Assembly: GCA_030704615.1 (NCBI GenBank)
Contig: CM060731.1
Coordinates: 61,070,001 to 61,134,000, forward strand
DNA length: 64,000 bases
DNA from: Takakia lepidozioides
Lineage: Eukaryota > Plantae > Bryophyta
Direction: 5' to 3'
Shown here: positions 1-32,830 of the stretch, piece by piece
Position numbering within the stretch: the stretch's first letter is position 1
Layout of the letters: every line of letters begins with the position of its first letter
The notes under the pieces: model-generated
Seen by the model: only the letters and a program-made list of their open reading frames with translations
The model's database searches: none
Told to the model about the DNA's origin: nothing
Made by a program: the position numbers and the translations under genes

Positions 1-92
1 TTGTGCAGACATATGTGCATTCTCATATATGCATTTTCAAACTTCAGACTCAAAGACCTTATGCTCAATAATGTGACGATAAATTCTGGCAG

Positions 93-2316
93 GCCGGAGC
101 GAAAAGCCAGACTTCGTTTTCCTGGCCCATGAAATTGGTTTGGATTCTGTGCTACACCTGCAAATGAGTGTTATCTCATTTCATACAGTGCCTTTCACAT
201 CGGACCGGTGGTTTGTTTGGCTTCTATGGCCCATCACCGTGCCTATCATGATCTTGATGTGGATCTTTGGGTCTGCATGCGTGGGATGCCAGTACCGACT
301 AAACCAATTTCAAGGCCAAACCTGGGTTATGCCTCGATTCGGTTTTCAGGTCAGTAACAATTTAAATTATGCATATGTCAAGTGCTTGGAAATGTAGATA
401 CTGTCTAGACATATGTTGTACATGGATACATGAACTCGTACCTCTGGTAATGTCGATTCAAGTTGAGTGCACATAAGCTGCTTCCTCTGTAGCAGATGAC
501 ACCATGGTCCTTTGAATCGTCGTGAACTTATTATGACATATAGCAGCAATCAATTTGAGAAATTTGTCAAAAGTTGCCCGGCTTGCCAACATGCATGATT
601 AGTCATCTGCAAACAAGTCTTGTGCAACAAGATCTGAATTTGTTGCCTCTCCTTGCCTTGAAAATGTGCAGTATTTTCTTCCCTCTGAGAAGCCACGCAT
701 CAACAAGATCATAGAACAAACAATGTTGGAAGCTGACGAAATGGGAGTCAAAGTTCTCACCCTTGGAGCACTCAATAAGGTTCGAACAACTTCTCCATCT
801 GCATGTCTTTCATGCCTCACACTAGGTCCCAAGGTGTCAAATGTAGAGCTTAAAGCGTAAACTCGGCATAGACTGTGATCCATTGTCTTGTATTATCTCA
901 GATCATAGTACATCATGTACAGCTACTTACAAACCAGTTTCTCTGCATGTACCCAGAACGAGGCGCTGAATGATGGAGGAACAAGGTTCATCAAGCGCCT
1001 TCCAAATCTAAGAGTTCGGATTTGCCACGGGAACACGCTGACAGCAGCCGTCATCCTCAATGGGCTACCCAAAGATGTGACCGAAATTTTTCTAACAGGA
1101 GCCACATCCAAGTTGGGCAGGGCCATTTCCCTCTATCTCTCCAGACGCAACGTGCGAGTTCTGGTATGTTCTCCAGTCTGATCATGCAGCTCACAGAGTG
1201 TTAGACAACGTCGCGGACATGGCCGCAACTTGAGGGATAACATTCTAAATCGTGACTGATTGTTTTGTGCATTCGAAACAGATTCCGAGTCCTGACCACA
1301 ATCCTACAATTGAATACTAAAACCGCTGATCCACTGTGACTCTGTATTCCCATTGACCAGATGTTGACAACATCGCACGAACGATTTAAGGCTGTTCTGG
1401 ACGAATGTCCACAAGAGTACAAACACAATCTTGTCCAGGTTACCTCGTATAAAGATGCCTGCAACTGCAAGGTAAGCCAGTAGTATTATGCTCACCAAAG
1501 TCTACAAAATTATACAGTTGAAAACTGCGCATGCAGGAAACTTCCATAACTTTCAGTTTCACACTCTATTTTGGACATTATGTCCATGTTGCATGGTTCC
1601 CATCATCTTGCCCGGCCTGCCTCACTGTTCATGGCTGGCCAGGCATAGATGTCGTGGAAGCAGCATTCCTTTGTTTACTAGCTGTTTCAACTCTTCGAGC
1701 TGGCTGCTACAAATCTCGGTAGAAGGATCAGATGTTTTCATGTAGTTCTTGATGCATAACCTTTCCGGACACTGATGGAAGTGTCGTGGTTCCTGTGCAG
1801 ACATGGGTAGTTGGAAAGTGGGCATCACCTAAAGATCAAAGCTGGGCTCCAGCAGGGACGAGATTCAACCAGTTTGTGGTACCCATCATACAGGAATCCC
1901 GTCAGGATTGCACCTATGGAGCTCTGGCGGCCATGAATCTTCCAAAGCATGTTAAGGAGCTTGACACCTGCGAGGTGAGTCTTGGATTTATCTTTTAGTT
2001 TGCACTGTTCTGAAAACAAGAAACTCACAAAAATATGAAAGTGCTCATATTGTTCTGGTGGTGAATGCAGATCAACCTGCCCAGAGGAGTAGTGCATGCA
2101 TGCCATGCAGGAGGCCTCGTGCATCTTCTGGAAGGGTGGACACACCATGAACTGGGTCCAATTCCTATCGACCGCATCGACATCGTCTGGAAAGCCGCCA
2201 TGAAACATGGGTTCTCTCCTCTGGAGAAAGTAGGCCTCCTTCAAGAATTCATCCAAGGCAATGTTCTGGACTCTGAGAAAAGTGAGCATCTATTATCACC
2301 TGCACCACTACTTTAG
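93..2316 (+). CDS. CER3: ECERIFERUM3/WAX2-like (CER1/CER3 family) wax biosynthesis protein, 3' six exons; the 5' part lies upstream of the window
   Basis: Exons 93-349, 672-779, 957-1163, 1361-1471, 1801-1974 and 2071-2316 are all GT-AG bounded and in frame. Spliced peptide includes PDFVFLAH...[11 protein letters not shown]|YFLP...[16 protein letters not shown]|NEALNDGG...[11 protein letters not shown]...[17 protein letters not shown]...|TWVVGKW...|[25 protein letters not shown], matching the CER3 C-terminal (WAX2_C) region from memory. Confidence 0.93.
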
Positions 2317-3475
2317 TAAGTGCATGGACAGCCAGGAAAGCAACACCTTCTGAAATGGTCAATTGATCAGAGTACAGTGACATTGAAGAACAGTCATTAC
2401 AGTGACCCTAATTCTTTCATGCGCGAGCTCTCAGTTTTGGGGGTCCCATCTTCCAGCCCTGCCATTACTGTACATAAGCTTGAGATGGGAGGAACCTACA
2501 TCACAGGGAGCATTTGCAGCCTAGGGTATGATATTCGTGGTGATTCAGCTATTTGCAAGTATTAAAGACCACGTGAAATCACTACAAACTCTAGTTGTAC
2601 CTTTGCTGGGACCTTAAGCATCCCAAAATAAAGGATTGCTCATCTCTACTTGCATTCAAACATGTTATCCTCGTCTCTCTACAAGTGGGTGCGAGTAGAA
2701 CTTGATGATGATGGAGCAACAGGGCATGGGATAGACTCAGTCAGGTTGGGTCTGTGGAGCCATAAGCACATGCACCACACCTCCAGTGGTGGTTATACAA
2801 CATACCGTGGTGGTGGTCTTTCGCCCATAAGCAATCCAGCATAAAATTGGAGCATAATGAACAGTTGCACAAGCCTCAAACTGACAACCTAAAGCCATGG
2901 AATTCTATCGATATGTTCAAGGTACAAACCGGCTGGAAATCAATGGGTTCCAATTGCTGAAGCCTGATTGTGTACGCTGGACTTATCTTATCCCTCAGTC
3001 CTTCCCAACCATGTCAGAACCCCGTTTGTGTCAATGGCGCAATTGTCGCATATGAAAACACTTGTACACGTACTGATCAAATAACAGATATTATTGATCT
3101 TGAAATGAAGATATACAGTAAGAATGACAGTCTAATACATGGTACACTCTCATGGACATCACCAGCATTTTCCTCTCTGCTGAAAGACATGTAGCCCTTT
3201 CCCTTCTTTGAAAGGGTGCAGGCTTGTGGCCACAATGCAATGAATCCCACCTCCGTTCTCCTTTCTTTCTCTTCTCAGCAAATTTCATAATCTATGTTCC
3301 AAAACTTGCTGACATTTCCAGCTGTCACTGCTGGGTGTAAAACCAACGAACAGCACTCTTTAAGCAACCCCAAGGACTGTCGTAATGGTGATGGCAGGGA
3401 ACCACAAGTATATCCCTCCATCTCTCTCTCACAGGCAGGCTTGGGTGACATCTCATAATCAGACAAACTGAACAT

Positions 3476-6400
3476 TCAGACGTTCTCAGCACTTCCCTCC
3501 ACAGGGTGGGTATCCCAGTTTTGATAAAGCAATGCAGCAGCAGCACGCGCAGAAAGAGAGGAGCTGTACTTCTTTCGTAGTGACACTAAAAGTGCATCAT
3601 GGGATTCCTGCACCACCAACAGCAGGTGACTGTCTTATTGAAGTAGTTCTGCTATAAGTATTGAGAAGCAAGAAGAAAGACCAGTACAAATATCTCTCAT
3701 AGTGGCCTCTCTTGAGTCTCCATGGCCACGCATCCTGATAAGGAGATGGGAAACGTTAAGAGAAACCAGCAGTCAACCCAAGGTCTCTTGCGGTCACCAG
3801 TCATTATTAGTAGCTCATGGGTTCTTCCATATGCAATGAAGACCACATACTATACCACCCTGTGGGAAGCAGGTAAGAAAAGCTACTGCCCTCAGGTGAT
3901 AACTGATAACTGAAACTCCAACATCTCCTTGTTTGCAGATACCATGTTCATTTACCTCTGTTGGCATTTCCATTTTACCCCTAGGCAGGAGATGGGTACT
4001 CTAAAGGTAGGAATCCCTCAGTTCTGAGTATGCCATTCTGTGTGAATCAGACTTTGTTGTGGGCTCCAGAAAGAAGGTTTCAAGAGCAGGATTGGGCTAG
4101 CGCGCCAGAGCCACCTCCCAGAGAAGATTGAAGCATGTGTGGCAGGAAGTCTCCATATTTTAGGAAGAACAAATAGAGAGTCTGAACGTTCAATTAAGGG
4201 AAATTATTAAGCATACAGGTCATGGACGCTTATCACCTTCAACACCCGAACCTCTTCCTCCAATGCAACTGCTGCTTCTTTCTGAAAGAGCCACACACCA
4301 CAAATCCAAATGAGTTGTCTAAATACTGGACCATCTTTCTTCTCAGGAATACTCAAACGGCTCTCTCTCTCTCTGTCTCTCTCTCGCTCTAGCCTCATCG
4401 TGATGGTGGCTACATTCTTGGTAACACTCAAGAATTGCCTAATCCCGTTATTCTGTTCGGAATTTTTTGCCTAGAATAGAACAGGAAACGGGTTACCGTT
4501 TCCCTAAACCGACAGCAGTCACCCTATATGGTCAGAAGAGAGGCTGCCCTATGTCTCTAGAGGCCTGGCTCTTCTCTTTCCATTTGGAAGAGAAGTGGGC
4601 AAGAGCTGAAGGAGCAGTCACCCTAGTGCTGAATTAAGGCTGCAAGAAAGGTACTCACCCAGGCTAGATGTGCCCTTGATTTCATTAGTTGGCTCTAGCA
4701 ACACTTCCCTTTGGGAATGGGTTCTCACTGTTGCTAACCTTGTGATAACTACCACCCTCCCATGTGCTAGTATGCTGTCTTTTCCTTATGTTTTGCAATC
4801 CATGAATGTCCCCTAACTTAAGTCTATCCAGAATTTTCACCTAGAACAGAACAAAAGAACTGAAAAACGGGGTGCATGCTGCCGAAACCCTTTCCCTGCT
4901 TGCAGATACCTGCGGTCCGTCGTAAAACGTACAAAGATCAACAACTGCTGCACCAAAGCTCTAATTACCCGAGCCAAATGCTCCATGTACCGCTCATCAG
5001 TCAGGCTAACGAGATGCCGAGTAGGTGTCAGCGGCTCAATCACTAGATGCATATATGAGGGCCGACAATCTCAATCAAAACAATTGGGCAGCAGACTGGC
5101 CCACTGCGCACGTCGTATCATGTACTCTGCAAAGTACATGTGGGTTTCCCAAAGTTTTAACCGACAGCAGCTGCCCTATACAGTTAAAAACCCTGGCTGC
5201 TCTTCTCACGTGGAAGAGGAGCAGGTGAGAGCTGAAGGAGCAGTCATCTTGCTGCTGAACTACGGCTACAAGCAAGGTACTCGAACAGGCTGTTCAGTAT
5301 GGCAACACAAAGAGAGTGGACACTATGTACTTACTTGACCAGCTCTACTTTGAATCTATGAATACTTTTGTAAACCAAGGGCCTCTACACCTTTGGGGAA
5401 TGGGTGCTTACTGTCATGAGACCACCACCCCCTCCCGCTGGATATCTGAGATGGCTGAACGGACCCTCCCTTACTTCTCCTCTCTTTGCTAGTATGACCT
5501 GCTGCAGGGATGGTATTGATAACAATTTAAGCCTGGGGCTCTGTAGGCATCAATAACCAGTTGGTTGTTGATTGGCTGTGATGGATCCAGTCCTCTTTGT
5601 TGCAGGAAATGCTACTAAGGGGAAAAGCCTAAGGGAGTGAGGCTTTGAGCTCTCTCAAACCTCAAATCTGTTTGTATGTGTTAGGTTTGAACACATACAC
5701 TCTCTGTTCTTCTCTGAATGGATTGAAGGAAATCTGTTTGTGAGAAGGGCTTACCTAGTGTGCATTTGATTGCCACTAAGAACACTAAAAACTGGTTTTC
5801 CAGCAAAGATATGTGAAGGGAGATATGGAGGCAGATCTGGGAAGAGGCAGTTTGATGGTGCATAAATAAGGCTGTCTGATGTCATTAAAAACAGGAATTG
5901 TATACATTTGACATGCTATGACATAGTGGAATTAGGCTTTGTTTCTTCCACTATCTGCTGTTTGCATAGATGGTCTGTGGAGACAGCGAGGACATACAGC
6001 TGCCGCTTTCCAAACAGGCTTGGTTTTCAATTCTGGCAAGTGAGCTGCTGCCTTTGCACTAGATGAACAAGGGAGAAATAGAAGAAGAATGGCTACTGTC
6101 AGATCTTCTACCAAGAAGGGACTGTCAGGTATCTTCCACTGTCATCCTGAGGTAACGGTGATGGTGGCTTCAGACATGTTGAAAAGTTCGCAGCCCCTTC
6201 CTACACAGACACTTCAGGTGTTTTCTCACAGCCATCCGATCCGAACATCCATCATCACCAACAAGCAACAACTAGAAAATAATCGACCCTCAAGCTAGCA
6301 CCTTATAACACACACCCACCAAGAAAGTCTATATGGCCCACCCCCAAAAGGGGTCAGTAGCCGCAAGATGAAGTGACTCTTCAGTAACGCCGGCTTTGGC

Positions 6401-9400
6401 CGGAGTCTTTTCTCTCTCTTGTTGTCTAATTTTTCATCTAGTCTGGAATAGACAGATCCTTTCTTGTCAGGATAAGCACAAACTCTTAGAGACTCCCAAC
6501 TTTACCTATAGCCTTCAGATTTGAGAACCAGAAGTTGTTTGGGTCCCGTTGAGATCCTTTTGATTTGAGTTTAGGTTGTTTTACTTTGTCCCATGGGCAC
6601 TAAAGACGCCCTCTATTTGTTTAAACGTTTCTTATTTTCTATCTGCTACGTTTGCCCTTGACATGGCCCAAGACTATGGCAACCAGGTTTTTATGAGATA
6701 CTCTCTGTTCTATCTCTCTCACCCCACCCTGTCAAAACAAGTGCACTAGATAAACCTCCTAAACGCAGCTGAAAGCAATGGAAGAAGGGCAGGGCAGTTG
6801 CCTGGCGACTCATTTTGACTCGCAACTCCAGGCTGCGCTGACGCTCCTCAGCAAGAGCGTGCATGGCTGCCTGCCTGTTCAGTTCTGCAGCCTGCACTGC
6901 CTTGCGTAACTCCTCCACCTGCTCTCTCAAATCAACCTGCTCTCCCAACAACCACCAGTGCACATGTTAACTATGCCTGTACCTGCAGCAGTGACAAAGC
7001 AGGTTGACTTAACTACCCAGATCAAGTCAGTCTACATAATGTACTAACCAACCATTTGCTATTAATTCTCTGCTGACCTCATCCTTGCCTTGCCAATCAC
7101 CTCCAACAATCCTGGAGCTTCTGTCTGGCAACGAAGCTTTAGACTCTGGCCATCCCTGTCTGAGACCTCCCCTGCCAAGACCCTTGGCCTCTGCTTGTTT
7201 TGAGATCCCTGGCATAGCCTTACGAACAGCGGGCTTTTGTTGGAGTGAAGGTTGTTTGAGCTCCCTGGGAGTACCTAGACCTGAAAAAGGATTACCCATC
7301 TGAGCTGGGATTTCATCTCGCACAGACTTATCATGACCAGCTGGAGGCAGCGCAGTTCTATTGCCTGCCAGCTGAGATAAATCCAAATTGTCAACTGTTC
7401 CAACTTCTGATGGATATTGCACCTCTTCTTGAGGGCCAGCAACATGCAATTTCCTTGGGTCAGAACCCTGCTCTGCTAGGACAGGAATGAAGGGCTCTTT
7501 TGCCTTGAAAGGCTCATGGGAAGTAGACTGAATTGCAACACGTTGACCAAGAGGACCATTCCTGAAGGGTGATCTTTTCTTTCGAGGAGAATTGCCAAGA
7601 ATCACCTCCCCTTCATGGATGACCAAGCGGTCTGTCCGACCAAAAGCATCACTTGGAGTGGGTATTGACATTGCATTAAACCGGTAACCACCTGGGAATA
7701 TGAGCTCCTCTTCTCTGGCAAGAGGGTGATCTAGACCTGGGAAGTTATCCAGATGTTTTCTAGTCCTCGTACGGGCTCCTCCTTTCAAATCATCACGCCA
7801 GTGCGCCTTCAACATTCGCCTTCTCACAGCTTCTCCATGTTGTCCTTGAACCATCCCAACAACAGAATAACCAAGCCTGAAAAGAACAAAGAGCACCGCA
7901 AATACTAGGCCCACCAGGCCAGCAGTTTGTGGGACATGCTTCCAGTAAGGTGCAGAGGATACAGATGAGAGAAGTTCTGCAACAACCAGCCAAACAAGTA
8001 GCAATACCCATTATGGACTGTCACCTCATTTTCTTTCACTACCAAACAAGTGGCCAGAGGTTACCATCAAATCATACAATGGATGGGTGGGGTAAGAGAG
8101 GAAGAAAGGAATGTCAGATGTGCCATAAATGAGGCAAGATGCAGATATTACAGAAGATACCAGGTCAACTTCCACTGCACACTCCAAGTAAACTAGATGG
8201 CCACAGATCCTGACTGTGGACCTTATCCATTCTGTTGTCAGGTAGCTGTGTGAAATACAAGAGACATGCAGCTCTTGGATTTTTTATATCTCATGCTCAA
8301 AACTCTATACCTGTTGCTGACAGAAAGATGTCCAATAGTGTTGTTGGCTTGACAAGAATGCTAAGTATATGGTGTTCTTGCTGTCTTTGGTATGCATAAC
8401 ACATCAAAGTGATATTTTTCCAATTCAGGCTAACACAGATATGGTGCACTCATGTTGTTGGGCTTAATACGAATGCTAGTATGTGGTCCATACAAGCCTC
8501 TGCAAATTGATTTTGTCCTATCCTTTTGCAATATTTCAGAATGTACTCATAAGAAGTTGTTTCCATAGGCAATATTTCAGAGAAAGAAAAGAACCATGGA
8601 CACCCGTGAGATTAAAGGAGTCAGGTACATCCACTCGAGCACGTATGTCCCTAACTGCATTTTTGCCTCGAAACAGCAAACTGTTCACTGAAGAGACCAT
8701 GTTTTGTCCGTTTCTTTGCACTCTTGTTCCACTTTCCTGTGCAGCAAGTAAAGACAAGTTAGAACCTGCCTTCCTGCCATTGTCTCCTGATGACAATGAC
8801 AATCCACCACACATAAGAACAAAATGACACTGGACACCAACAGATAAGGTCACGTAGGCAAGTTCATGGGAGGATAGGTGGAAGAGCATTGCACCGTTAA
8901 CCCTTTCTATATTCTAACAGAGTGGCCCACAAAGCAGTCTACTCACTGAGAGATCACAAGTGTCTGCACAAAGATGCTTCCATAATGCTTGTCGAGAAAG
9001 GGCGCCCCAGACACCATCGTCAGGTACTCCATGTGCAATCTGAAACTGCTGTAAGGCCTTCTTCGTCTCTGGTCCAAAAGATCTGCCAAAAAGACCAACA
9101 ATCTTGAACTCTCAAAACATCTCTGCAAAATAATTCCTACAATACAATCAGCTTCTCACATTGCTTCATCAGCTTGCACTTCCAGTTTTAACAGGGCCTG
9201 ATTGACTTCCCTTCCAGATTTCACAGGTTTCATAACCGTGCATTTCCAGTTTTAACAGGGCTTGATTGAGTTCCATTCCACATGGCTTCTGATCAGTTTT
9301 CAGTGTTGATCAACTTTCATTTCCTATTTTACAGTTTGAAGTGTGCTTGATTAGCACTAATCTCGGGTCTTAGCAGGTCCAGTTTGAACAGAGCTAGGTC

Positions 9401-11345
9401 AGCTTCCATTTCAGATTTTACACTTTTTAGAGCACTTGATTAGCTATAATCTCGAGCCTTCCCAGGTCTTGACCAAACATTCACTTCAGGTTTTCACAGG
9501 GCTTGTGACCAGCTTGCATGTCCAGCATGGACAGGACATTATCAACTTCCAGTTCAGATTCTCACAGGGCTTGTGATCAGCTTCTGTTCCTGTTGTAGCA
9601 GGTCTTAATGTCAGATATCACAGGGCTTCGCTCCAAGAGACTTAGAGAACACTTTATATCTTTTGAATGCATCAAACCTCACAATAAACTGAGTCCAGCC
9701 GCTTACGCTGTTAAAGAGGTGTGCTCAGGAAGATGGCCAAACCAGTAGAGAGCTCTCTGTATCACATAAGAGAAAATATCAAATTGAATCAAACTGCAAT
9801 GTATATCAAGTTGAATCAGTGATGTCAAAAGATACATTGCTAGTCTACAAAGAGTACCTCCTGTCAGCTCAACAGAACAATTCGCAGCCTCCTGGTGCAC
9901 AATATAATAATAGGAGAACAAACCAAGGCAACTTTACAAGTTTATGCATATAGTGCTGTATTACTTCCTTACAGTCAATGCTACTGCTGGTGAGGACATT
10001 GAGGTAGAAAGTGAAAAGACTAGTCATCTTTGTCCTTCAATGTGCTCACGACTTCCCCTAATGTACTGTTGCATGTGTCATCAGGCTGATTCAAATCTCC
10101 ACCTAATTAGTTTGAGTTTCTTCAAAAACAGCCTCCCACCTCTTCCGTGGTCTGGCATACCTTGAGTTAAACATTAGCGCCTCAGTATATAAGGACAAGA
10201 TTTGACCTGCAAAAAGTAAGATGATCTATGGATGATTGGAGTGCCCCCCTAATCTTTTCTCCTGTAGTTGATACAAAGTTTTTCTCCTTTCAAGACCATT
10301 CAAAACATTGCTGGCATGCATTACTACATGTTCTGTGAGGACATTCTTTGTATAAATCCATGGTACTAAATTGAAGACCAAGGGTAGCGCCAGTTTTAAT
10401 TGGATAAACTCCACTATCAACTTTTCTATATTCGCTCAGTAGCACACTTCATTTCCCATTGGAACACTTTTGGCTGTAAGGCAGGCTCAGGCATCTACAT
10501 CATGACAGAGCAATATTGGTTATAGATATATTGGAGTGCAGTAAAAGTTCGCAACCAACCTGCAGATTTAAAACTTGAGGTCCAGAGTCGCCCTCCCATA
10601 AGTCTCCAGAAAATCTCAATTCATGTATCTTTATGAGCTCAGACCTTGGGATTTGATCCTGAAACTGCCTGTCGTCTTGTAGCTTCCTCTCAGACCATAT
10701 CACCTCATCAGTTTCTCCGCATAGGGGTTCTCCAGTAACCTTGGAATGTGGCGAAGGATGTCTTGACATCTCCATACGACAACTCTGCGTTTCCTCCCTG
10801 TTATCATTTCTTCTCCCAAACTTTCTCTTTGCTGCACGGTCAGTGAGTGAACCTGCACTGCCTCTCTGTCCTTCCCTTGACAACTGAGATTCTCCAGCTT
10901 TGCCTTCGCCAAGATTCCGAATCCGAATCCAGTCCTCTTGCCTGTACGGTCGTGCTTCACCCCTCTTTTCCGCTTTCCTTCCCAAGCTTGCCAGAGCAAT
11001 CCTTGTGGCCAGGGGGGGCCATGGCTGTTCTTTTTCCAAGCTGAACACCTTGTCATAAGCACAGATTGCGCTTCCTCGAAACCCTCTCCTCGATGATCTC
11101 CGTAACGCGTTTGGAAAGCTTCCCCTACTTGCAAATCTAGAGATCTGAGCTCCCTTCTCCTCTTGCGAAATATGCCTCCAGCCAGACGTTCTATTCAGAG
11201 TTCCGTAAGGAGACCAATCCAGCTCTCTGTAGCGCCTCTTAACAGGCAACTCTGAAAACCAAGCATCATCATGGAAAGAGGTGTACTGGGGTGGGACGTG
11301 ACTGTCAGTTTTAAGGAACTTAAAGCAGCTTCCCTCAGTTAACAT
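3476..11345 (-). CDS. 771-aa protein: basic N-terminus, PG_binding_1-like peptidoglycan-binding domain, single TM helix, low-complexity linker, C-terminal coiled coil
   Basis: Eight exons: 11345-10560, 9756-9707, 9082-8947, 8736-8604, 7976-7078, 6936-6802 (GC donor), 4281-4237, 3607-3476. Total 2316 nt, phases consistent, ATG to TGA. Exons 1-3 join to GDLWEGDSGPQVLNLQ|RALYWFGHLPEHTSLTA|SFGPETKKALQQFQIAHGVPDDGVWGALSRQAL. TM segment AGLVGLVFAVLFVLFRLGYSVVGMV. Exons 6-8 join to VDLREQVEELRKAVQAAELNRQAAMHALAEERQRSLELRVKMSRQ|KEAAVALEEEVRVLK|ESHDALLVSLRKKY. Confidence 0.85.
4361..4850. repeat. Dispersed intronic repeat starting at a (CT)n tract; related copies at ~5140-5500 and ~41473-42205
   Basis: Shared blocks gatggtggcta..ttggtaacac..caagaattgcctaatccc, gctgaaggagcagtc, ctaccaccctccca..ctagtatgctgtctt and ttgcaatccatgaatgtc. 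Confidence 0.75.
9170..9630. repeat. Degenerate minisatellite (about 30-nt unit) in intron 2 of the PG-binding gene
   Basis: Recurrent ttccagttttaacagggc(c/t)tga and cagatt(t/c)tcacagggcttgtga units. Confidence 0.6.
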
Positions 11346-12815: not shown

Positions 12816-15800
12816 TTATGTTGAATGTGCATTCACCATCTCCCGATAGACCATATCAATGAAATGATCATTCTGCACACACATTTCCAGCTGTCAACTA
12901 CATCCTCAACTGTAACTCTATACCACAGCTACCTAAAACAGCACTGCTTTCCACCTCCAAACCGTTAGCCTCCTACACCTCCACAGCCTGTAGCCTCCCC
13001 ACCCTTCCGAAGAATTGTGTGGGATGTATTTCCACCTTAAGGGCTATCCGTGTGCCTGGTGGTGGGGAACTTTTATCAGTGGGCATATGTTGTAGACACC
13101 CAGTTGCATTTTCTCCATCACCCCCCACCTGACTCCATTTACAGTGAAGCTCAATGTTGCAGGCGGAACATCAATGTGTGAGACAAAAACCCTTTCTCAG
13201 ATTGATACCCGACCTGGAGCGGTAATATCCCAAGGGGAACTAGTCGCGGGGGTTCAGTATCTCGCAAATAGCAGCACATGAAGTAGTTTGTTTTAGGGGA
13301 ACCTATCTATAACATCTACAAGCCGGAGCTGTCACAGGTTCTCCCTTGTTGTACACATGGTGAATGGGCTTAATAAGATAGCCAAGGCCACTGTTTTACA
13401 ATATGTGTCTCTTCTACATGTGCCTGTAGATTATATAACAAGCCATTCTTGCAACAACGCACTCACCAGAGATACTCGCATCAAACACCTGTTAAAAGCC
13501 TGCCACAAACTTTACTGCTAGTTATTTTATGGATCTCCAATCACCTATTGCACCCAGAAAGTTTACAACGGTTCATTTTAAGCTTGCAAATGGGGGAGAT
13601 TACCTTTAATAAGCGGAAGAGAGCATCCCGAACGCCATCCCTTGTAATAGACCCACTGTGGGACATCGAAGAAGATGGAGCCAGTGAAGGGGGGGGATTG
13701 GGAGGTGGGAATGGTTGAAGGAAGGGAGCACCATGTGATGGTTGCAATGGAGCTGTTGAAGTGGGCAATGATGTGGTGGCAGGGGCTGAAGAGAGAGGGG
13801 GAGGAACAAAAAAGGAGGGCTTTATGAGAGTTGTGCGCGCTGTGCTGCCGACGTCAGGAGTATCATGAGATAGAGGAAGTGCCAATGGAGTGAGTGGCAG
13901 TGGTGTTGAGGTGCGAGAGATGATTGAGGGGACTGGCATAGGGGACAGGGTTGGGGAAGGAACTAAGGCTGGATGAGTTGCTAGGCCATGGGTGCTTGCT
14001 GAGGCTCGCGGGGGTGTTGACGGTGATGATTCAGGGGTGCTTATATGCGCTACACTCTGCTTCCACATACAGAAAGATAATGGCATTACTCACGACAACC
14101 CAAAAAGGAGATACAAGCCAGACAGACCACCACAATAGGTCTAAAGATATGCAAGAGCTGGCTAGTGGAGTGAGAGTGAGGGAGAGAAGGAGAATGGGAG
14201 AGGATTGGGGAGTCTGCACATGCCTGGTTCTTGACACACACACACAGATTTGAAAGAGAAAAACTTTATGATGTCCTCACCCCTGAGGGCCCACGGCAGA
14301 AAGAGCCTTACACTGAAGAAGCGCTCCAGAGGCTCATCGGGTAGCTCAGGCGTCGCTACAGGCTCTAGTGGACCCTCTACAATGGCTGCTGTTGGCACCG
14401 CCTCCAGTTCCTGGAATTCCGTGCTGCATCCATACATGCACATCTCTGAAATGTACAAAGGTCATCTTGCTAACACATTGCATGCAAGATGATATGCATT
14501 ATGCTTTCAGATACCCCTTGGATGGGGATCTTAGAGGGACACACTGATTTCTTCTATCATGTTGACTCATTTTAGCCTTCCATTTTAAGGGATACCTCAG
14601 CTGCTGACTGCTAAGATGCTCAGGGACATTTGAAGATTAACTTGCTTTGTTCCTCACCCTGCTGGATAGGAATGGACTTTGGATGAACCATTGGACCAAA
14701 ATGTTCTCCGCAAGTCCACATGTCAGATTCAGCAGGTTTTCACAGACGTGCTAACACTTCCCTAAATGAGGAACACAGGACCGGATACAGAGACAGAGTT
14801 CCAACAGACCTTGGGGCAAACAACTTCGGCTTCAGAGGAATCTTGGAGAAGGCATTCAAAATCCTGCAACAGCACAGTTAGCAGCTGAAGATCAGTACAG
14901 AACATTGCACAGCCAACAAGTTAACCACCACAGAACCTCAATGGCCACGATTGTACTGTCAGAATAAGGAACCAGCTAGACCATCCTGAGTAAAATTCTT
15001 ACAGGCCCAAGTCCCTTTTCATTTTCTGCTCCAACTGGCTATTGGTCACCAAGCTTGATGCAGTTGTGATGGTAATAAATACTGTTGTGGTCTCCAGTTT
15101 TGCAGAGGAAAGAGAAGAACAAACCTCGAGAAAAGCTTGGCCACATCTTCACATTCACGGGGGTTGTAGAACCAGATGCCATTAACTTCTTGCGCGGCAT
15201 TCCGATAGAGCAAATATGGCACTTGCACTTCATACTCAAAATCATCTAGTAAATCCTCCACCAGATTATCTGGTCCCCACCCCAATAACTCCCTGTATCA
15301 CAACCTTTTGTTTGACTTCATTCAGGTAAAAAGCAGCATGGCAGCCAACCCCAACCGCACGTAAAGAAACTACCCTTGCACTACACAGAATACAAAGCTT
15401 GCATACAAAATCCTTCCTTCCTGTTAGACACTATTCCCTTCCTTGTCATTTGTATCACAATACCTTTGCATGCTGCTTCACGCGTGTTTTAGCCTGTGCG
15501 AAAAAAGAGGACAAACTTGAACTCACTGAACAATTCCAGCATAACTCTCACAGGTGGTTGGATGTGGAGTACAGTCCTGTCAGACATGTCTTTCCTGGTT
15601 CAATTTTAAGACCTTCATGAATAGCCTAAAGTAAAAACAAGACTTTCCAAACCACGTACCTGTGCTACGTCGATTCATCACAACAAACTGGAAGCGAGGC
15701 TGTGTCCGCCTGCAAGAAGGCAGTCCACCTTGCCAATTACACTTCCAGACATCTACCACTGCACCCCGTGAGATACCATGCCACCAAGGATGATTGTGAA

Positions 15801-18364
15801 TAGAGACAGCTCAAAGAGATGATCTCTTACCGTTTCACGACGAAAAGTGATCCCTCCACATCCTTGCGACTCTGCAATCACAATTTGAGCCTGCTTTGTC
15901 AGCCATCAGTTGAGTATTCAGTCTTCCTCCTCTAATTTGCCGTTAGTCCACAGCAACTTCACTGTACAAGAAGGAGACATGCCCTTCCTCTGTCTCTCTA
16001 TTTACAACTGGCAAGGGCAAAGCGCTGAGTCTCACTAAATTTTTTCACTGCAGAGGGATTAACTCTGAGGTCAAGAAAACCTTGCTTTGCCGCGTTATTA
16101 GACCCACCTTGGAGTGCGGATCTGCTATATGGGTTGATAACTCCAACCAGGCTAAGTCTCTAGAATCCATTCAAGTGGGGGTGCTTAAGGAGCGCATGTC
16201 AGCATGCTCCAAAACAGCCAATGTGGCTGTTCGGGGTGAGTTTGGCATCCCTTCCTTAAGCTCCCGACGAGATGAATTCAAGGTCAGATGGTGGGGTCAG
16301 TTGCAACACATGTCCAACACCAGATACCCTAAGTTAATCGACTCTATATCTTGGAAACAGGACCGCCCTGTCAAACAGGCTAAGTCCTGGCAGAAGAGAG
16401 TAGAAGAGATTCTCAGGGATCTGAATCTGGACCCGCAAGTCTTGACCTTGCTGGATAAATCTGACTTAGAGACTGTAGTGTCCAAAGCCATGTCTGTTAC
16501 CAGCAAATTGTCTGATGCAAATGAAGTTAGGCAGAAAACTTCCCTGAACCTGTTTCCAGTCTGTGACATGGGGGAGGATATCATGGATGACCTCAAGGGT
16601 CTACCCACTCTCGGCACCAGACTGAAATTTAAACTCAGGGCAGGAAGCCTACCTTTGAACAGTAAACAGAAGCAGAGAGGAAAGGGAGAGTGCAATTGCC
16701 GGTTGTGTGGGCAACCCGAAGACCATATTCATTTTCTGATTCACTGTCCGGGGTGCTCTCACCAGAGAGAAGCTCTCCTCCAATCTATCAAGAGAATTGT
16801 GCCTGTACCTCTTTACCAACTTTGAAAGTCTCGAGGCTGAGCCAAAAGCCCAGGCCCTTCTGAGGCCTAGTTTTTGGGCAAATCACACACAGCAGATTGA
16901 TACTTGTGTGAAGGGATTTCTAGAGGATATCTGGAAAACCCGAATTAATTCTATTTATAAAGGTAAGTCTTACTACCAATGTCAGCCCCTGACAGAGGTA
17001 GGTTCTGTCCCTTTGGTTTCTGCTCAAACTGGGGCGCGAGGTCAATGGCCACAAGGCTACGACAAACAACGTCTTATGAGTACATTCTATTTACAACTGG
17101 AGCACAGACCCCCCAGTTTCCAGGTAAGTTGCTGTCCATAGTTCCTTTCCCATCCTTTCAAAGAAACACAAGCATGCATATGCAACAGAAAATAAAGTAG
17201 GAATAAGACGTTGTTTGCCGTAGCCTTGTGGCCATGGACCCCGCACCCAGTTTGAGCGGAACACAAAGGGACAGAAACTGCCTTTGTCAGGGGCTGACGC
17301 AGGTAGTACGACTTACCTTGGACTACGACTTACACACAATGGATCGAAGTTTTCCAGATATCCTCTAGAAATCCCTTCACACAAGCATCAATCTGCTGAT
17401 TTGCCCAATAACTAGACCCCAAAAGGGCCTGGGCTTTTGGCTCATGCACACATATGCAACAGAGAAAGATTAAATAGTAAAAATTTCCACTAACGAGTAC
17501 TGAATTGTTGTGTTGTACTTGTCATCATGGACCAGCCTTTATGACAAAATTTCGATTTGCCACGGACATAGTGACGAGAAAGGAAGACAGAGAGAGTGCC
17601 CAATCTTGTAAAACAGGCCTGACAGTAGAACCCCAAATACAACAACTAATTAGGTCAAATTGTTGCAGGCACCTTCCTCTCTCTCTCTCTCTCTCCATTC
17701 CTTGTTCACTGACAGACTGGGAGAGCAGGCCCTTGCACATAGTGCAAAGGCTGATTGCTCATTCCCTGCTATGCTGGTTCACCACAGTCTGGCTTCCAGC
17801 GGACCATCTATGCGCATCCCCTCCAAAACCCTTGCAAGGACGTTCAGAAAAAACTAGTAGGCTTCGACGCGCCATACAGCACACTCGTGGCCATACCACC
17901 CGACCGTCCTCCCAATCTGTTGCCTCCATACCCTACCCCTTCCGCTGCATCTCCCTAATATAACCAGTTCCCATACTGAATCGGCAACCACGATCCCCTG
18001 TTGCAAATCGCAAACTTGCCGTCTCACCATGAGACCGAAGGTTTCCTCCCCCAATTTTGACTCCTTTAATCACTACAAATTACAACATGCATGCGCTTCA
18101 TCCCTCACCCATGTGGGTAAATAGTAGATACATGCGCCTCCACCGCAAGCACCCACTCTACAAACCTAATCCTCCAGCCCCTCTCAAAAAGCACGGCACA
18201 CATACCCATTGACTGGCATCAACACTGAACTGGTAGAAGGTGACATGCGCAGCTGTGGAAAGGATATCTTCCACATGCCGATCCATTCTCTGCAACACAG
18301 TCAGGTTGAGCTCCTTGGTACTATTCTGATCAAGCTGCGGCATGGGCTTCCCATTCTGGGCCAT
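12816..18364 (-). CDS. DCP1: mRNA decapping activator DCP1 (EVH1 domain, Pro-rich linker, C-terminal trimerization region), 356 aa
   Basis: Exons 18364-18206, 15871-15831, 15709-15660, 15269-15125, 14863-14810, 14423-14312, 14056-13604, 12872-12816; total 1071 nt, all GT-AG. Peptide MAQNGKPMPQLDQNSTKELNLTVLQRMD...|SRKDVEGSLFVVKR|RTQPRFQFVVMNRRST|DNLVEDLL...NGIWFYNPRECE...EFQELEAVPT...ITRDGVRDALFRLLK|NDHFIDMVYREMVNAHST*. Confidence 0.95.
16012..17085 (+). mobile_element. 5'-truncated non-LTR retrotransposon (RT C-terminus plus CCHC finger; RTEX/L2-like) in DCP1 intron 1
   Basis: ORF 16082-16825 reads IRPTLECGSAIW...AVRGEFGIPSLSSRR...CRLCGQPEDHIHFLIHCP. Perfect 15-bp TSD tctatttacaactgg at 15997-16011 and 17086-17100. 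The 3' end reads ...caaacaacgtcttatgagtacat(tct) with no poly(A). Confidence 0.85.
17204..17444 (-). mobile_element. Second, inverted 3'-end copy of the same LINE family
   Basis: Reverse complement of 16838-17076 (gagccaaaagcccaggccc...ggctacg(a/g)caaacaacgtctta). Flanked by similar catatgcaacaga direct repeats. Confidence 0.85.
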
Positions 18365-24874: not shown

Positions 24875-27800
24875 TGTCGCGGCCCTTTGCCTTGAGGGCA
24901 GGGGGTCGGGACACATCAGGGGCTGCCCCTGTGGTGGGGGCAGCGGCAGCGATAGGTATGGGGGGCTGAGGCACCCTTGAGTGCCCAAGGCACTCAGGGA
25001 AGCGGAGGCGCTCACTAGGTGGAGCCCCGCACACCGGGTTGCGGTGGGGGTGGCTCCACAAGGGGTGGTGGTAGCTTAGTGGGACTTAGTGGGGGTGGCA
25101 TAGGACTCACCATGGGGGCGGAGACCTCGTGGTGGGAGTCGTGGGGAGTCTTGGGACTCATCACGGTCCATAGGGGCCGTGGTGAGCGGGCCAAGACTCA
25201 CCGCGACTCACCACCGGGAGTCGAGGGTTTTCGTGGTGGTTCGCCATAAAATGGCATGGCTGGTTGTGGAACCCCCGCGGACAGCTACAGAAGTATGTAT
25301 AGGGAGTAGTAACCCCGAGAACGGTGCAAGCCCGTTGGTGACCAAAAACTAGTGAGTAAGCGAGCGAGCCGGAAAGCGACCAAAGAGTGGGGAGCTGTTC
25401 CGGACTGCCATCTACCAAAGGGAATTCTCCTAGTCCCAAATAGGTGGAGGGTTTAGAGGGAAGCGGAAGGGGACCGTTATGTCCCGGTGAGCAGCCGAAA
25501 CTCCAAGTTGGCCCGGCGGCCAGGTTGGGAGTCAGGCGCGCGCATCAAAGCGAGTAACTATGACTTGAAGGGGAGTTTACCGAAGTGAGGTGTGCGACAT
25601 TTGGTATCAGAGCTTAGAGTTCAGTACGCGATCGTCCTTGGGATTGGCCTCATCATGGGGTCGGGCAAGCCGAAGCGAAAGCGGAACGGCCCAAAAGATG
25701 ATGATCCCGGTGAGCCCGATGGGGGCGACGTGTCACCGAGGCGGCCGTTTGAGGAAGCGATGAATTTTTCCGAAAACGAGGCCGCTCAGGAGCGGGAGGA
25801 ATCCGAGGAGTCGGAGCCCGAGGAATCCTTGAGAGCTCCGACAAACCAAGAGATGCCTCCCATGCCGGCAGCCTTTTGGGAAGGGTTGTTGGCGCAGTTT
25901 GGCGGGACGTTGAAAGACGTGTTGAAGGCGGCTAATGCCACTTCCACTAAGGCAAAGTTTAAGGTGAAGCCTAAGGAACCCGGCACCTTCGAGGGCGTTC
26001 GAAACCGGAAGGCACTCAACACCTGGCTCCTGGAGCTAGAGCAGTACTTCCGGGCGGCCAAGTTGAGTGACGAGGATCGGGTGGAAGTGGCTCCCACCTA
26101 TTTGAGGGGCTATGCTCAACAATGGTGGCAGAAACGCCTTCACGACCGAGGCCCAAGCCCGGAAACCTTGAACTGGAGTGGGTTCAAGGAATTGATGAAG
26201 AGACAGTTTGTGCCCTCAACGCATCCTGGCTTGCCCGGGACAAGATGAGGAATTTGAAGCAAACAGATGACATTCGGGGGTATGTCCAGGCTTTCAATGT
26301 GCTGTTGCTCGAAGTCGCGGACATGGACAGAACCAGAAATGGTCTTCAACTTTGTGGCAGGACTGGCCCCATGGGCTAGGCGGAAGTTGGAGGAGAAGCC
26401 ACCCAAGACTTTGAACGAGGCAATTGAGAGAGCTGAATGTTTCTCGGATGTCCTTAGGGGTGAGAGACAAGGCCGTACGGAGCTGAACCACAAGAAGACC
26501 CGGCGGGAAGTGACTCCTCCCGACCGGAAAAGAAGTGGGATAGGCCACGCGGCGAAAATGGCACGTGGAAATCGAAGGGAGGTCCTTCACACGTCAAGGC
26601 GGCACCCGGTGCTTCGAAAGGAAAAGCGGGTGGAGCGGCTTATGGCGGACAGAAGGCGACCTTTGATGGAGTGTGTTTCAATTGCGGGGAGCCCGGGCAC
26701 ATGGCCAAGAAGTGCACGAAGCCCCGGCAATTGAACATGACTCGGGCGACCACGGAGCTGTCAGAAGATACCATCAGTCGCTTGGTGGAAGCGGTAGTCG
26801 CCAGGACTTGCAAGGTAGGCAACTATTCTTGTGAGTTGTATCAGGAAACTAGCGCCCTGCGAAAAGGGAGTCAATTATTGTTCGTGGATGGGATAATATC
26901 CGGAACTAACGTGTCGTTGTTGGTGGACACAGGAGCGTCGCACTCCTTCATGACGCCGGTGGCGGCGCGAAAGTTGGGACTCCCGACAAGTGACGTGGGG
27001 GCCTCTATTGAGGTGCGCTCTGCCAAAGGAGAACCTCAGTTGGCGACAAGGTTGGCGTTTGATGTTCCTCTTCAACTGGGGAGTTGGGAGGGACGTGAGA
27101 ACTTCACTATCTGCGAGATCGATGGAGTGGATCTCATTTTAGGGATGACCTTTTTGAGCAAATCCGGAGCGGTCATAGATGGCCGCAAGAGAGTAGTCAC
27201 GCTCCCATGTGGGAATGGTGGCGAGGTTTTACGAGTGTCGGAAACGCCCAAATCCGTGGGAGGGCGAATAAACCTTCTGTCAGCAAAGGAGTGGGCCGTG
27301 GAGGAGGCACACGAGTCCCAGTTTTTGCTTTACATTAGAGAAGTGAAAGGAGAAGGCGATGGGGAGCCGAGCCCAGATTGCATCAAGGGGATTTTGGAGA
27401 AATACCAGGATGTGATGCCGGAGGATTTACCAAGCGGCTTGCCACCGCGAAGAGGAGTTGACCACAAGATTGAGGTGATACCGGGATCGGGACCGCCTGC
27501 CAAGGCGCCCTACCGGTTGAGCCACAGAGAGTTGGTCGAGCTGAAGACTCAGCTCAAGGATCTAATGTCAAAGGGGTACATCCGGCCGAGTAAGTCACCT
27601 TACGGAGCCCCGGTGCTATTTGCAGACAAGAAGGATGGGACGCTGCGGATGTGTGTCGATTACAGGGCTCTGAATAAGGTGACTATCAAAAACCGGTACC
27701 CTTTGCCAAGGATCGACGACCTCTTCGATCGGTTGGCAGGAGCGAAGTATTTCAGCCGGATCGACTTGCGCTCCGGCTATCACCAAATTCGGGTGGCAGA

Positions 27801-30800
27801 AGGAGATGAGGAGAAGACCGCGTGCAGGACAAGGTATGGTTCATATGAGTTTTTGGTGATGCCTTTTGGGCTCACCAATGCACCAGCGACATTTAGCACG
27901 CTGATGAACAGCCTTTTCCAGAGTGGTTGGATGACTTCGTGATCGTGTACATCGACGACATCTTGGTGTACTCGAAAACAAAGGAGGAGCACCTGGAGCA
28001 CCTCAAAAGGGTGTTCCAGAAATTGCGAGAAGGGAAGCTGTATGCCAAAGCTTCAAAGTGCGAATTCGGGGTCACAAAAGTGGAGTTCTGGGGCATGTGA
28101 TTACACAGGATGGGATCAAAATGGATGACAGAAAGGTGAGGGCGATCTTGGACTGGGAGCCTCCGACTTCGGTCCCGGGAGTGCGATCCTTCCTAGGACT
28201 CGCCTCCTATTACCGGAAGTATGTGAGAAATTTCGCCAAGATCGCGGGGCCGCTGTCGGACCTTCTGTGTAAATCCAAAGTCTGGGTATGGAACACATTT
28301 TGTGGCCAAGCTTTTGCTGAATTGAAGCAGCGGATGACGGAAGCTCCAGTCTTGAAAATCCCGGAGTTCGATCGTCCGTTTGAGATTCATACAGATGCAT
28401 CGGACTTCGCAATTGGGGGTGTACTTATGCAAGATGGACGTCCAGTGGCTTACGAAAGTAAGAAACTGAATGAAGTGGAGCGACGGTGGCCGACGCACGA
28501 AAAAGAGATGAAGGCGGTGGTGCATTGCTTGAACTCTGGCGCCACTATGTTGGTTCCAACCCAGTGAAGGTGTTCACGGACAATGTCACGGTGAAGTATT
28601 TTGCCACGCAGCCCAAGTTGTCCCCAAAACAACTTAGGTGGCAAGATACTTTGGCAGTGTTTGACGTGGATATCCAGTACAAACCGGGACGGGACAATGT
28701 GGTGGCCGATGCTTTAAGTAGAAAGCAGCAGCTCTTGTTGGTGTACAAGGGCGAGACGGCGCTCCAAAGGAAGATCCGGAAGGCTTGCCGGAAGGATGAG
28801 CTGGCAAAGTGCGTGATGCAGGACTTGAGAATGGGGGTTAGATCGCAGTTCCACTTGCAAAACGGACTGCTCCGGTATAAGCAAAAACGTCTCTATGTGC
28901 CAAAGGGAGGGATCAGGGATAGTCTCTTGAGAGAATGCCATGATAGCCCGCTTGCGGGCCACGGTGGAGCCAAGCGCACTGCGGCACTCTTGAAGAAAGA
29001 GTATTTCTGGCCCAAACTGAGGGAGGAGGCAGAGGAGTATGTCAAGACATGCACCACATGCCAACAAAACCGGAGCGAGTACAAAAAGCAAGCGGGCTGT
29101 TACAACCCTTGCCGATTCCAGAGGGGACTTGGGAAAGCGTCTCGATGGATTTCATGACTGCTATGCCGCTGTCAAAAGGATTCGATGCAATCATGGTGGT
29201 GGTAGATAGGTTCAGTAAAATGGCCCATTTCATCCCCACCAAGGAGACGGCAACGGCGCAGGAGACAGGGAACTTTACTTCGCCCACGTCTTAAAGCATC
29301 ATGGAGTCCCGAAGGATATTGTCTCGGACCGCGATCCAAAGTTTACGAGTAAATTCTGGAGAGCACTTTGGAAGAAGATGGGGACGAGGCTGAAGATGAG
29401 CACCGCCTTCCGACCTACGACGGACGGCCAAACGGAAAGAGTGAATTCCGTAGTGAAGCAATTCTTGCGGAATTACGTGTCGGCAGACCAATCAGACTGG
29501 ATGGAACACTTAGACGCGGCAGAGTTCTGTTATAATAACACAGAACACTCCGCGACGGGAGTTTCCCCTTTTGTGTTGGTCTATGGAAAAGCACCTCTGG
29601 TGCCGACAAGTTGGGCCGCCCAGGACGTTGAGGAACCGGCAGTAGCGGCGGTACTGGAAGAACGCGAGCGTTTGTTGAAGCTCGCAAAGTACAACATTGC
29701 CAAGCTAGGAAACGGTATGAAGGCAGGCGAATCGGAAGCGGAGGGAAGTGAAGTTTGAGGCAGGCACAGAGGTCTGGTTGAACATCAAGAATTTTCGACT
29801 ACCTCCGGAAGTGAGTCCGAAGTTCGTACCTCCGTATGCGGTCCCCTTTCGCATTCGAGGGTTATGAATGAGGATGTGTATGAATTGGAGCTGCCGGCAA
29901 ACAGCAAGGTGCACCCAGTATTCCATGTCTCCCTTTTGAAGCCTTACTTCAAAGATGAAGCACGTCCGAATCGGCAGCAAGTGTTGCCGCCCGCACCTAT
30001 GCTGTTGGATCATGAAAATGAACCTGAGTACGAGGTGGAGGCAATACTTAAGTCAGGAGGTTCAAGAACCGAGAAACGGAGTATCTCGTCAAATGGAAGG
30101 GCTATCATCTTGTGGAGGCATCTTGGTGCGTGCCTCAGAAATGGGAAACGCATCCGAGGCAGTTGCAAGCGTTCGAAGGGCGACCTCAAAAGCGGAAGAA
30201 ACGTTGATGGGGACATCAACCTTGGAGCGTGGGGGAGGAATGCATACTTAGCCCGGTTTAAGCTAGCTCAGGAATCCGATTGCAAAACTTGTATTGTACA
30301 AAATTTGTTATAAAGAAATGGGTCCCAAATATTGTGCGTCCTATTGTGTTTGGAATGTTGATGCTTGGTGTGGTTGGCTAGTGTGTAGAATGCATGCTAG
30401 CTTACAAAGTGGGAGAGGTAAATTGGGTTAATCTTGTGTTTGCGCAGTGCCGAAATCGGGTGACTCCCATCCAGGGGCAGAAAACTTGCGCCTTATTTGG
30501 AGTTCACGTGCTAGTGCGCACCTGGCGCGTGCGCGTACTATAACTGCGCTACCGAGGGGGTTGCCTTGTAGTGCGGGCTAACGCGGAAGCTACGTGCTTC
30601 CGTTCACGTACTATAATCGTGTAGCCTCGGGACAAAGTCGTAGTGCGGCTTCGGCGTGTTCCCGTACCTCAGGCCAGCATTCCAAGGCGGACCCAATTGT
30701 AGTGATTGGGGCGCACAGTTGGTTCAAGATTATCTTCCTAGTCAAAGAGGGTTCCAGGTGAACCCTTGCTCAAGGTGATGCCAAAAGCGGCATCATGAGC

Positions 30801-31832: not shown

Positions 31833-32552
31833 AGTCACCCTTCCGCCGGAATAATTTGTTTTGGGGACAACTTAGGCTGTGTGGCAAAATACTTCACCGT
31901 AACATTGTCCGTGAACACCTTCACCGGGTTGGAACCAATATAGTGGCACCAAATCTTAAGGCAATGCACCACCACCTTCATTTATTTCTCGTGTGTAGGC
32001 CACCGTCGCTCTACTTTATTCAGTTTCTTACTTTCGTAAGCCACTGGTCGTCTATCCTGCATGAGCACACCCCCGATTGCGAAGTCCGACGATCTGTTTG
32101 AATCTCAAATGGACGGTCGAACTCTGGGATTTTCAAGACTAGAGCTTCCACCATCCGCTCCTTCAACCCGGCAAAAGCTTGGCCACAAAAGGTGTTTTAC
32201 ACCCATACCTTGGACTTACACAGAAGGTCTGACAGCGACCCCGCAATCTTGGCGAAATTTCTCACATACTTTCGGTAATAGGAGGCGAGTCCTAGAAAAG
32301 ATCGCACTCCCGGGACCGAAGTCGGAGGTTCCCAGTCCAAGATCATCCTCACCTTTCTGTCATCCATTTTGATCCCATCCTGTGTAATCACATGCCCTAG
32401 GAACTCCACTTTTGTGACCCCGAATTCGCACTTTGAAGCTTTGGCATACAGTTTCCATTCCCACTGCAATTTCTGGAACACCCTTTTGAGGTGCTCCAGG
32501 TGCTCTTCCTTGGTTTTCGAGTACACCAAAATGTCGTCGATGTACACGATCA
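31833..32552 (-). mobile_element. Remainder of the older rearranged chromovirus copy (short gag piece, then inverted RT/RNase H segment)
   Basis: Minus [24 protein letters not shown]...[14 protein letters not shown] matches ~27940-28630. 31833-31850 continues the gag sequence across the GAATG target site. Confidence 0.85.
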
Positions 32553-32830
32553 TAAGTTTCGTTATTGAATGCCTTAGCACATCGCGCACGCCACAGGTGC
32601 CATAAAGTAAATGCTCAAAGGGTTTCAAAGACTTGGCATGTGATTGATCTTGTTTTGGAGTTCCGATTGTAGTTTAAGAGCAGGTCGACAGGGGAGAGAG
32701 CAGAGAGGCTCCAGTGTCTGTAAAACACCTTGACCAGGGGCCATATCTTTGCCGGGGCAATGCAGGTGAGTAGGCAGTGTTCATGTGTTTCTATGATGCC
32801 TAAGGAGCAACAAGAACATAACAAAGCCTC
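32553..32830 (-). mobile_element. L1 LINE ORF2 C-terminal remnant (zf-RVT region)
   Basis: CSCCSLGIIETHEHCLLTC...IWPLV...TLWHLWRARCAKAFN. Confidence 0.65.

Follow-up and report, generated by a model that had tools for sequence, protein, structure and literature searches.

Does this moss locus encode a protein that holds peptidoglycan to a plastid membrane, and if so, by which of its parts? The sequence analyzed here, hereafter the window, is a 64,000-nucleotide (nt) stretch of plant nuclear DNA from Takakia lepidozioides (contig CM060731.1, positions 61,070,001 to 61,134,000). An initial annotation made from the letters alone had joined eight exons on the minus strand, from 11345 to 3476, into a gene for a membrane protein with a peptidoglycan-binding (PG) domain and a coiled coil, and had put the product forward as a candidate anchor for plastid peptidoglycan. 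Judged by comparison with its relatives, this moss gene with a PG domain is real. As to its role, we see about an even chance that it resides in the plastid envelope, with the PG domain gripping peptidoglycan in the intermembrane space and the coiled coil exposed to the cytosol or the stroma. Architecture, fold, a basic patch that signals sidedness, and absence from angiosperms all agree with the anchor idea; the match with the Mur genes is imperfect, and the part that appears indispensable is the coiled coil.

The exon limits, read from splice signals, lie on the minus strand where they had been placed, with AG acceptors and consistent intron phases (0,2,0,1,0,0,0), and no exon contains a stop or a frameshift. 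Exon 1 (11345-10560; 786 nt, 262 amino acids) begins with the ATG at 11345, encodes a disordered Ser/Arg-rich N-terminus, and closes with the opening portion of the PG domain. The two small exons that follow have the predicted lengths of 50 and 136 nt, which recur in Physcomitrium and Sphagnum: exon 2 (9756-9707) supplies the remainder of helix 1 and a loop, and exon 3 (9082-8947) supplies helices 2 and 3. Exon 4, which starts at 8736, encodes a variable spacer. Exon 5 (7976-7078; 899 nt, as in Sphagnum) carries the transmembrane helix, the basic patch, a hairpin motif, and a disordered linker. The coiled coil is divided among the last three exons. Its first part is in exon 6 (6936-6802; 135 nt, 72-82% identical to moss orthologs) and its middle in exon 7 (4281-4237; 45 nt), whose protein is 100% identical to that of a contig from another moss (L001). 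Its end is in exon 8 (3607-3476; 132 nt), which also holds a conserved terminal helix (3544-3515) and the TGA stop (3478-3476).

With the exon-4 donor after 8604, the exon lengths (786+50+136+133+899+135+45+132) sum to 2316 nt, or 771 amino acids and a stop, which is the product originally announced. This donor is doubtful: it yields an exon of 133 nt, as in Physcomitrium, but loses a Gly that is invariant in six orthologs. A donor after 8595 (8736-8595, 142 nt) retains the Gly and is favored by homology, in which case the product may be 774 amino acids long. Introns of the window copy are longer than those of its orthologs, and the donor of intron 6 (6801) is GC where the orthologs have GT. 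The gene had been called hidden, which is true of the open reading frame (ORF) track; its orthologs already carry database annotation.

The window gene was analyzed exon by exon, and the whole-protein analyses (profile scan, fold, and tree) used database orthologs. No transcript of the Takakia gene itself was found, and the window junctions rest on homology. The L001 contig, which is genomic, contains seven of the eight exons, collinear and 33-100% identical, with matching limits and a conserved start-codon context. When an RNA contig of Physcomitrium is compared with the genome, all seven equivalent junctions are present with the same phases (exons of 50, 136, 133, 135, and 45 nt), together with one additional intron. 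The eight-exon structure is common to Sphagnum and Marchantia, and the exon limits are conserved in four moss genera and Marchantia. For exons of equal length, the ratio of nonsynonymous to synonymous differences per site (pN/pS) between the window gene and three mosses is 0.18-0.20, which indicates that the exons, including those of the domain, are under purifying selection. It is therefore extremely improbable that the gene is decaying or that its exons form a chance chain. Such a view could point to the GC donor, the weak exon-4 donor, and the missing Takakia transcript, but it would leave the intact reading frames, the conserved boundaries, and a pN/pS of about 0.2 without explanation.

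Layout and alignment place the window gene, as a moss member, in the orthogroup of Marchantia Mp1g16870 (MARPO_0001s0027). It has the seven introns shared by the family, with the phases given above, a single transmembrane helix with a basic patch after it, and the conserved C-terminal coiled coil with its terminal helix, and its orthologs are alike in domain order, intron positions, and phases. Outside the ferns, exons 6-8 are 62-100% identical to bryophyte, lycophyte, and Ginkgo members. Searching 1.84 billion representative proteins with exon 6 resulted in 33 proteins (10 of them with 410-761 amino acids), and the C-terminal region of the Physcomitrium ortholog resulted in 27; exon 5 returned a single relative, owing to the length window of the search. 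Several family matches lack a species name. The named members come from Physcomitrium (three genes, LOC112281904 with protein XP_024374688, LOC112279473, and LOC112289409), Ceratodon, Sphagnum (CAK9272688), Marchantia, Riccia, Calypogeia, Diphasiastrum, Selaginella, Psilotum (a fragment), Pteridium, Ceratopteris (KP509_29G052100), Adiantum, and Ginkgo (Gb_17239). A quick tree of 26 homologs, built with the window gene left out and with long branches that make the placement of the domain-less sequences unsure, tracks plant phylogeny and thus suggests one vertically inherited land-plant family. The closest named sequence to the window gene is that of Sphagnum; because exon 5 is only 43% identical, the window gene belongs to another moss lineage.

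No angiosperm member was obtained in the protein searches or among the 14 Joint Genome Institute (JGI) contigs recovered with exon 8, all 14 of which are moss-like. This absence is persuasive, as divergent fern members still score 1e-19 or better. The lack of any named conifer, hornwort, or algal protein in the protein searches is weaker evidence, because sampling is thin, two of the searches used a word index and a length window, and the third scored only 8000 candidates. The initial annotation had recognized no named gene with this architecture. No paper on these loci or on the architecture was found in a literature whose subscription journals lay mostly outside coverage, and the orthologs are annotated under automatic names, most of them in UniRef as 'Peptidoglycan binding-like domain-containing protein'. 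The architecture seems not to have been described before, nor its link to plastid peptidoglycan, whereas the gene family itself is already in databases.

Two of the Physcomitrium paralogs each lie directly downstream of a kinesin gene (contigs L002, 1-6970, and L042, 1-4271), probably as a retained duplicated block; Sphagnum, Marchantia, and the window showed no such kinesin neighbor. Sphagnum-associated contigs contain isolated copies of exon 8 with stops (L033, L035, L037, L040, and L041; at about 5000 or at 2090-2430), and a second intact Sphagnum paralog is located in L038/L039.

The domain itself had been described as a PF01471 domain split over exon 1 and the two small exons, and scoring with hidden Markov models (HMMs) bore this out. 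Exon 3 alone matches PF01471 (profile positions 26-57) with 28.9 bits and an E-value of 1.3e-6, against a gathering cut-off of 23. Against a family profile of 86 positions built from database homologs, the exons scored singly align at 1-32 (exon 1, residues 231-262), 33-48 (exon 2), and 51-86 (exon 3). Except for that of Selaginella, every full-length named homolog tested passes the PF01471 cut-off, with homolog scores of 35-50 bits. The expected three-helix bundle appears in the AlphaFold model of the Sphagnum ortholog as a confident PG-binding fold, with predicted local distance difference test (pLDDT) values of 89-97 over residues 201-290 and a four-helix unit at 201-295 (pLDDT 86-97). A family-specific helix ahead of the PF01471 core (residues 232-248 of the window protein, 10652-10602) is kept in all domain-bearing homologs and corresponds to helix 204-215 of this model (pLDDT about 90). 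The nearest fold match is the N-terminal domain of SleB (6TCI), with a root-mean-square deviation of 1.3 Å over 69 columns, and further matches include CtpB, SleC, and the wall-binding domains of phage endolysins; by sequence, the top match among structures is 1LBU.

A Pfam scan of the homologs found no catalytic domain in the family, and the Sphagnum model contains no further folded domain. A peptidoglycan hydrolase (SleB, endolysins) and a plant matrix metalloproteinase were ruled out for want of a catalytic domain, only the wall-binding part of SleB being matched. A scan of GTDB with the whole domain gave no match, and one with a 30-residue piece of it gave 19 loci, chiefly in Patescibacteria and Clostridia. 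Neither scan returned a cyanobacterial match, and plasmid matches were weak; a cyanobacterial origin of the domain is not supported by the GTDB scans.

Not every feature of the domain favors a grip on peptidoglycan, and two may weigh against it. Surface residues Arg6, Asp31, and Asp54 of AP3gp15 have been proposed for binding (PMC5674055), and at these sites the family has mostly Trp/Arg, Thr, and Thr; Sphagnum has Thr at both Asp sites, and in the window protein Asp occupies the third (the Asp54 equivalent). In addition, the domain alone is no proof of binding, because a domain of this type also occurs in the nucleoids of Arabidopsis, in pTAC5. The altered fingerprint residues and the pTAC5 precedent would suit an explanation that we consider unlikely, though a serious contender, in which the protein is a plastid membrane scaffold that works by its coiled coil and the PF01471 domain is a protein-interaction module without peptidoglycan binding, as presumed for pTAC5. 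The domain is, however, 51-81% identical across land plants, and the same Thr-Gly variants are present in bacterial tandem wall-binding domains, both of which argue against the scaffold.

The orientation of the protein in the membrane bears on the same choice. The single transmembrane helix (residues 387-409, 7923-7855) was correctly called: exon 5 has one hydrophobic 19-mer (mean Kyte-Doolittle 2.27), all 26 homologs likewise have a single strongly hydrophobic segment, and the Sphagnum model has the corresponding helix at 358-380. A conserved basic patch, located by alignment and charge counts, follows on the C-terminal side (residues 419-431, 7827-7789). The 25 residues after the helix contain 4-8 basic and 0-4 acidic residues, and Lys plus Arg exceed Asp plus Glu in 26 of 26 homologs. 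By the positive-inside rule, a basic flank marks the cytosolic or stromal side of a membrane, so the C-terminal side is predicted to be cytosolic or stromal. Since one helix separates them, the PG domain and the coiled coil are predicted to lie on opposite sides of the membrane. An ordinary inner-envelope stop-transfer route, as for ARC6, would leave the domain stromal and expose the coiled coil to the intermembrane space; the patch on the C-terminal side is contrary to such a stromal N-terminus and counts against a scaffold delivered in this way.

The N-termini of the family are loosely transit-peptide-like, and from their composition a transit peptide is plausible. They are rich in Ser/Thr and Lys/Arg in bryophytes and Ginkgo and acidic in ferns and in the window protein (10% acidic residues in the first 100 amino acids of the latter, 9-15% in ferns). 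An Arg/Ser-rich stretch of the window protein (residues 82-96, 11102-11058) is, by sequence and composition, a candidate transit-peptide end. No signal peptide was detected by hydropathy in exon 1 or in the homologs, the maximum Kyte-Doolittle value of any 19-mer in exon 1 being 0.02. Most fern members (P0019, P0024, P0026, and P0062-P0067) combine acidic N-termini and a diverged terminal helix with a retained PG domain.

These N-termini raise the question of whether the protein enters plastids at all. They are no textbook transit peptides, those of ferns in particular, and Arg/Ser-rich leaders can also target mitochondria. Many moss peptidoglycan-binding proteins are moreover expected to act in defense, according to Dowson et al. 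(PMC9434261). A protein outside the plastid, be it a mitochondrial membrane protein or a sensor of bacterial peptidoglycan at the plasma membrane or on endomembranes, nevertheless seems very improbable to us. The lack of a signal peptide and the approximately 385 residues ahead of the only helix make secretory export of the domain unlikely, there is no kinase or other signaling domain, and the family has few copies and evolves slowly, which is not the pattern of immune receptors.

In the C-terminal half of the protein, the initial annotation had described a low-complexity linker of about 270 amino acids between the helix and the coiled coil. The linker is indeed predicted to be disordered, but it is about 255 amino acids long and, at 3.94 bits over the distal 174 amino acids, is not of low complexity; its first 90 amino acids hold conserved motifs. 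A short conserved motif at residues 484-496 (7632-7594) is predicted, with low confidence, to be a beta-hairpin. The long coiled coil stood up well: the Sphagnum model has an 83-residue helix at 633-715, with hydrophobic residues at 64% of the heptad a/d positions, followed by a short terminal helix. This helix, the domain unit, and the membrane helix are the confident parts of that model, and the remainder is disordered. For the C-terminal region, the PDB gave no sequence match, and neither Pfam nor NCBIfam had a family that reached its cut-off. Most of the invariant columns of the family fall in the long C-terminal helix, which is a point in favor of the scaffold.

An annotated Physcomitrium isoform (XP_073389664) ends just ahead of the coiled coil, and an exon-like stretch lies in the same intron of L001 (5407-5515); mosses may have a tail-less isoform.

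If the protein tethers peptidoglycan, its distribution might be expected to follow the Mur genes, and it does so only in part. A complete set of Mur genes, class A PBP among them, is known from no angiosperm (PMC12681378), and no angiosperm was found with the family; the absence of the entire gene there also speaks against the scaffold. The following observations weigh against a role in binding the wall. Selaginella moellendorffii has all ten Mur genes (PMC12681378), yet its ortholog has six exons and is without the PG domain, no trace of which was found in six frames of 13.5 kb of Selaginella genomic DNA. Transcript P0029 retains only the start of the domain, and transcript P0030 has an unrecognizable, unfolded remnant. 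Conifers and streptophyte algae that have Mur genes gave no named match. The domain has thus been lost in three lineages that lie apart on the tree, with the helix, basic patch, and coiled coil retained, which is what a scaffold would lead one to expect; in the alignments it is the coiled coil, rather than the PG domain, that is indispensable. Finally, no localization data for the family were found in the literature. Two entries of the moss chloroplast proteome are listed as peptidoglycan-binding (Pp1s287_31V6 and Pp1s355_33V6), but their neighbors could not be matched to the three Physcomitrium paralogs, and they were not counted as localization.

The distribution fits flagellated sperm as well as it fits the Mur genes, which also weakens the case for a tether. 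Mosses, liverworts, lycophytes, ferns, and Ginkgo have flagellated sperm, and conifers and angiosperms do not. The named members all come from the former groups, and the latter gave no match, so that a role in plastid positioning, in cells that form flagellated sperm or rely on plastid-based microtubule organization, would explain Selaginella and also, better than the Mur profile, the missing conifers. The protein would then be an outer-envelope anchor that links plastid and cytoskeleton through a cytosolic coiled coil, with peptidoglycan binding as an optional foothold, and the topology predicted above is compatible with this. We nonetheless regard this explanation as improbable: no expression data were found that link the family to gametes, conifer proteomes are so thinly sampled that absence from them is weak evidence, and no cytoskeleton-binding motif was recognized in sequence or profile searches.

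A tether of the plastid peptidoglycan is the simplest reading, because the only peptidoglycan made by a moss cell is in the plastid intermembrane space, where PpPBP binds PDV2 (PMC12681378). Under this reading, a nuclear-encoded, single-pass protein would tie the peptidoglycan layer to an envelope membrane. Its N-terminus would enter through the translocon at the outer chloroplast envelope (TOC), the PG domain would be located in the intermembrane space and bind peptidoglycan there, and the coiled coil would dimerize or bind a partner on the other side. Proteins anchored in the outer envelope typically have such a basic patch C-terminal of their helix. For this reason, and because N-first import with a stop at the helix would yield the topology directly, the outer membrane is slightly favored, with a cytosolic coiled coil and a role like that of bacterial outer-membrane tethers. 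The alternative, an inner-membrane protein with a stromal coiled coil, would need re-export of the domain. The likely result would be an intact envelope or a wall that is coupled to the machinery for division or positioning. In its fullest form, the proposal is tentative and lies somewhat on the unlikely side: a host-built tether that spans the outer envelope, grips the peptidoglycan inherited from the endosymbiont with a bacterial domain, and offers its coiled coil to the machinery of division or the cytoskeleton in the cytosol would be the first known structural anchor of this layer, lost toward the angiosperms together with the wall.

Reviews of plastid peptidoglycan list only synthesis enzymes and the PBP-PDV2 contact, and they call the function and organization of this layer in land plants open (PMC10784329). 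The family described here is a concrete, non-enzymatic candidate for holding it, and has suitable parts and a distribution that is about right. Marchantia has a single copy, as far as these searches go, and Physcomitrium three, and both plants are easy to edit; Mp1g16870 in particular allows a direct test of the tether idea, and the domain-less version of Selaginella is a natural control. Should the domain prove to bind, it could also serve as a probe for plastid peptidoglycan that is native to plants.

The remainder of the window contains other genes and mobile elements. A CER1-like wax biosynthesis gene, present with its 3' part (1-2565, plus strand), is convergent with the PG-domain gene, the stops being about 900 nt apart, and an exon of a DCP1 decapping gene (15046-15285, minus strand) lies upstream. 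Several ORF pieces at 25592-30300 (plus strand) belong to a Ty3/gypsy-type retrotransposon with gag, protease, and reverse transcriptase, of which a second fragment is at 32197-32628 (minus strand). Pieces of a reverse transcriptase like that of long interspersed nuclear elements (LINEs) and other retroelement-like ORFs without Pfam matches occur at 47295-50890 and 54400-56870 (both minus strand) and at 16082-16825 (plus strand). A pentatricopeptide repeat (PPR) protein gene is located at 63099-63752 (plus strand), and an ORF at 35939-36394 (minus strand), without a Pfam match, resembles an exon of another gene. No synteny of the genes flanking the PG-domain gene with other species was seen. 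Within the gene, intron 2 contains a degenerate array of 32-64-nt repeats (9165-9583), and intron 6 contains a diverged tandem duplication of about 650 nt (4507-4731 and 5159-5414; 77-84% identity), amid which lies an exon-like open stretch without a Pfam match (4891-5028).

Among known systems, pTAC5 (At4g13670) is a plastid protein of plants with a peptidoglycan-binding-type domain (PMC4080259), and in this respect it resembles the family. It had been set apart by its architecture, and this distinction holds: pTAC5 resides in nucleoids, has a C-terminal DnaJ-type zinc finger, acts as a disulfide isomerase, and is kept in angiosperms, whereas the family has a membrane helix, no zinc-finger Pfam match in the exons or homologs, and no angiosperm member. 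PDV2 has no PF01471 domain and is likewise kept in angiosperms. In Physcomitrium, its link with PBP is an example of an envelope protein that joins the peptidoglycan machinery of the intermembrane space to the division apparatus (PMC12681378), although PDV2 binds the synthase PBP rather than the polymer. The closest functional analog is SjcF1 (All1861) of Anabaena PCC 7120, which is non-enzymatic, has one membrane segment, and combines PF01471 domains that bind peptidoglycan with a protein-interaction module (PMC4488944). It differs from the family in having two PF01471 domains and an SH3_3 domain, both drawn as periplasmic, and no reported coiled coil, where the family has one PF01471 domain and no SH3; homology beyond the PF01471 domain was neither tested for nor noticed. 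For Lpp, Pal, and OmpA, the likeness is limited to the proposed job, as their folds are unrelated and they have no trans-membrane coiled-coil output. These proteins hold the bacterial membrane to peptidoglycan by lipoprotein or beta-barrel anchors. By analogy, the family may work like SjcF1 or like these bacterial wall tethers.

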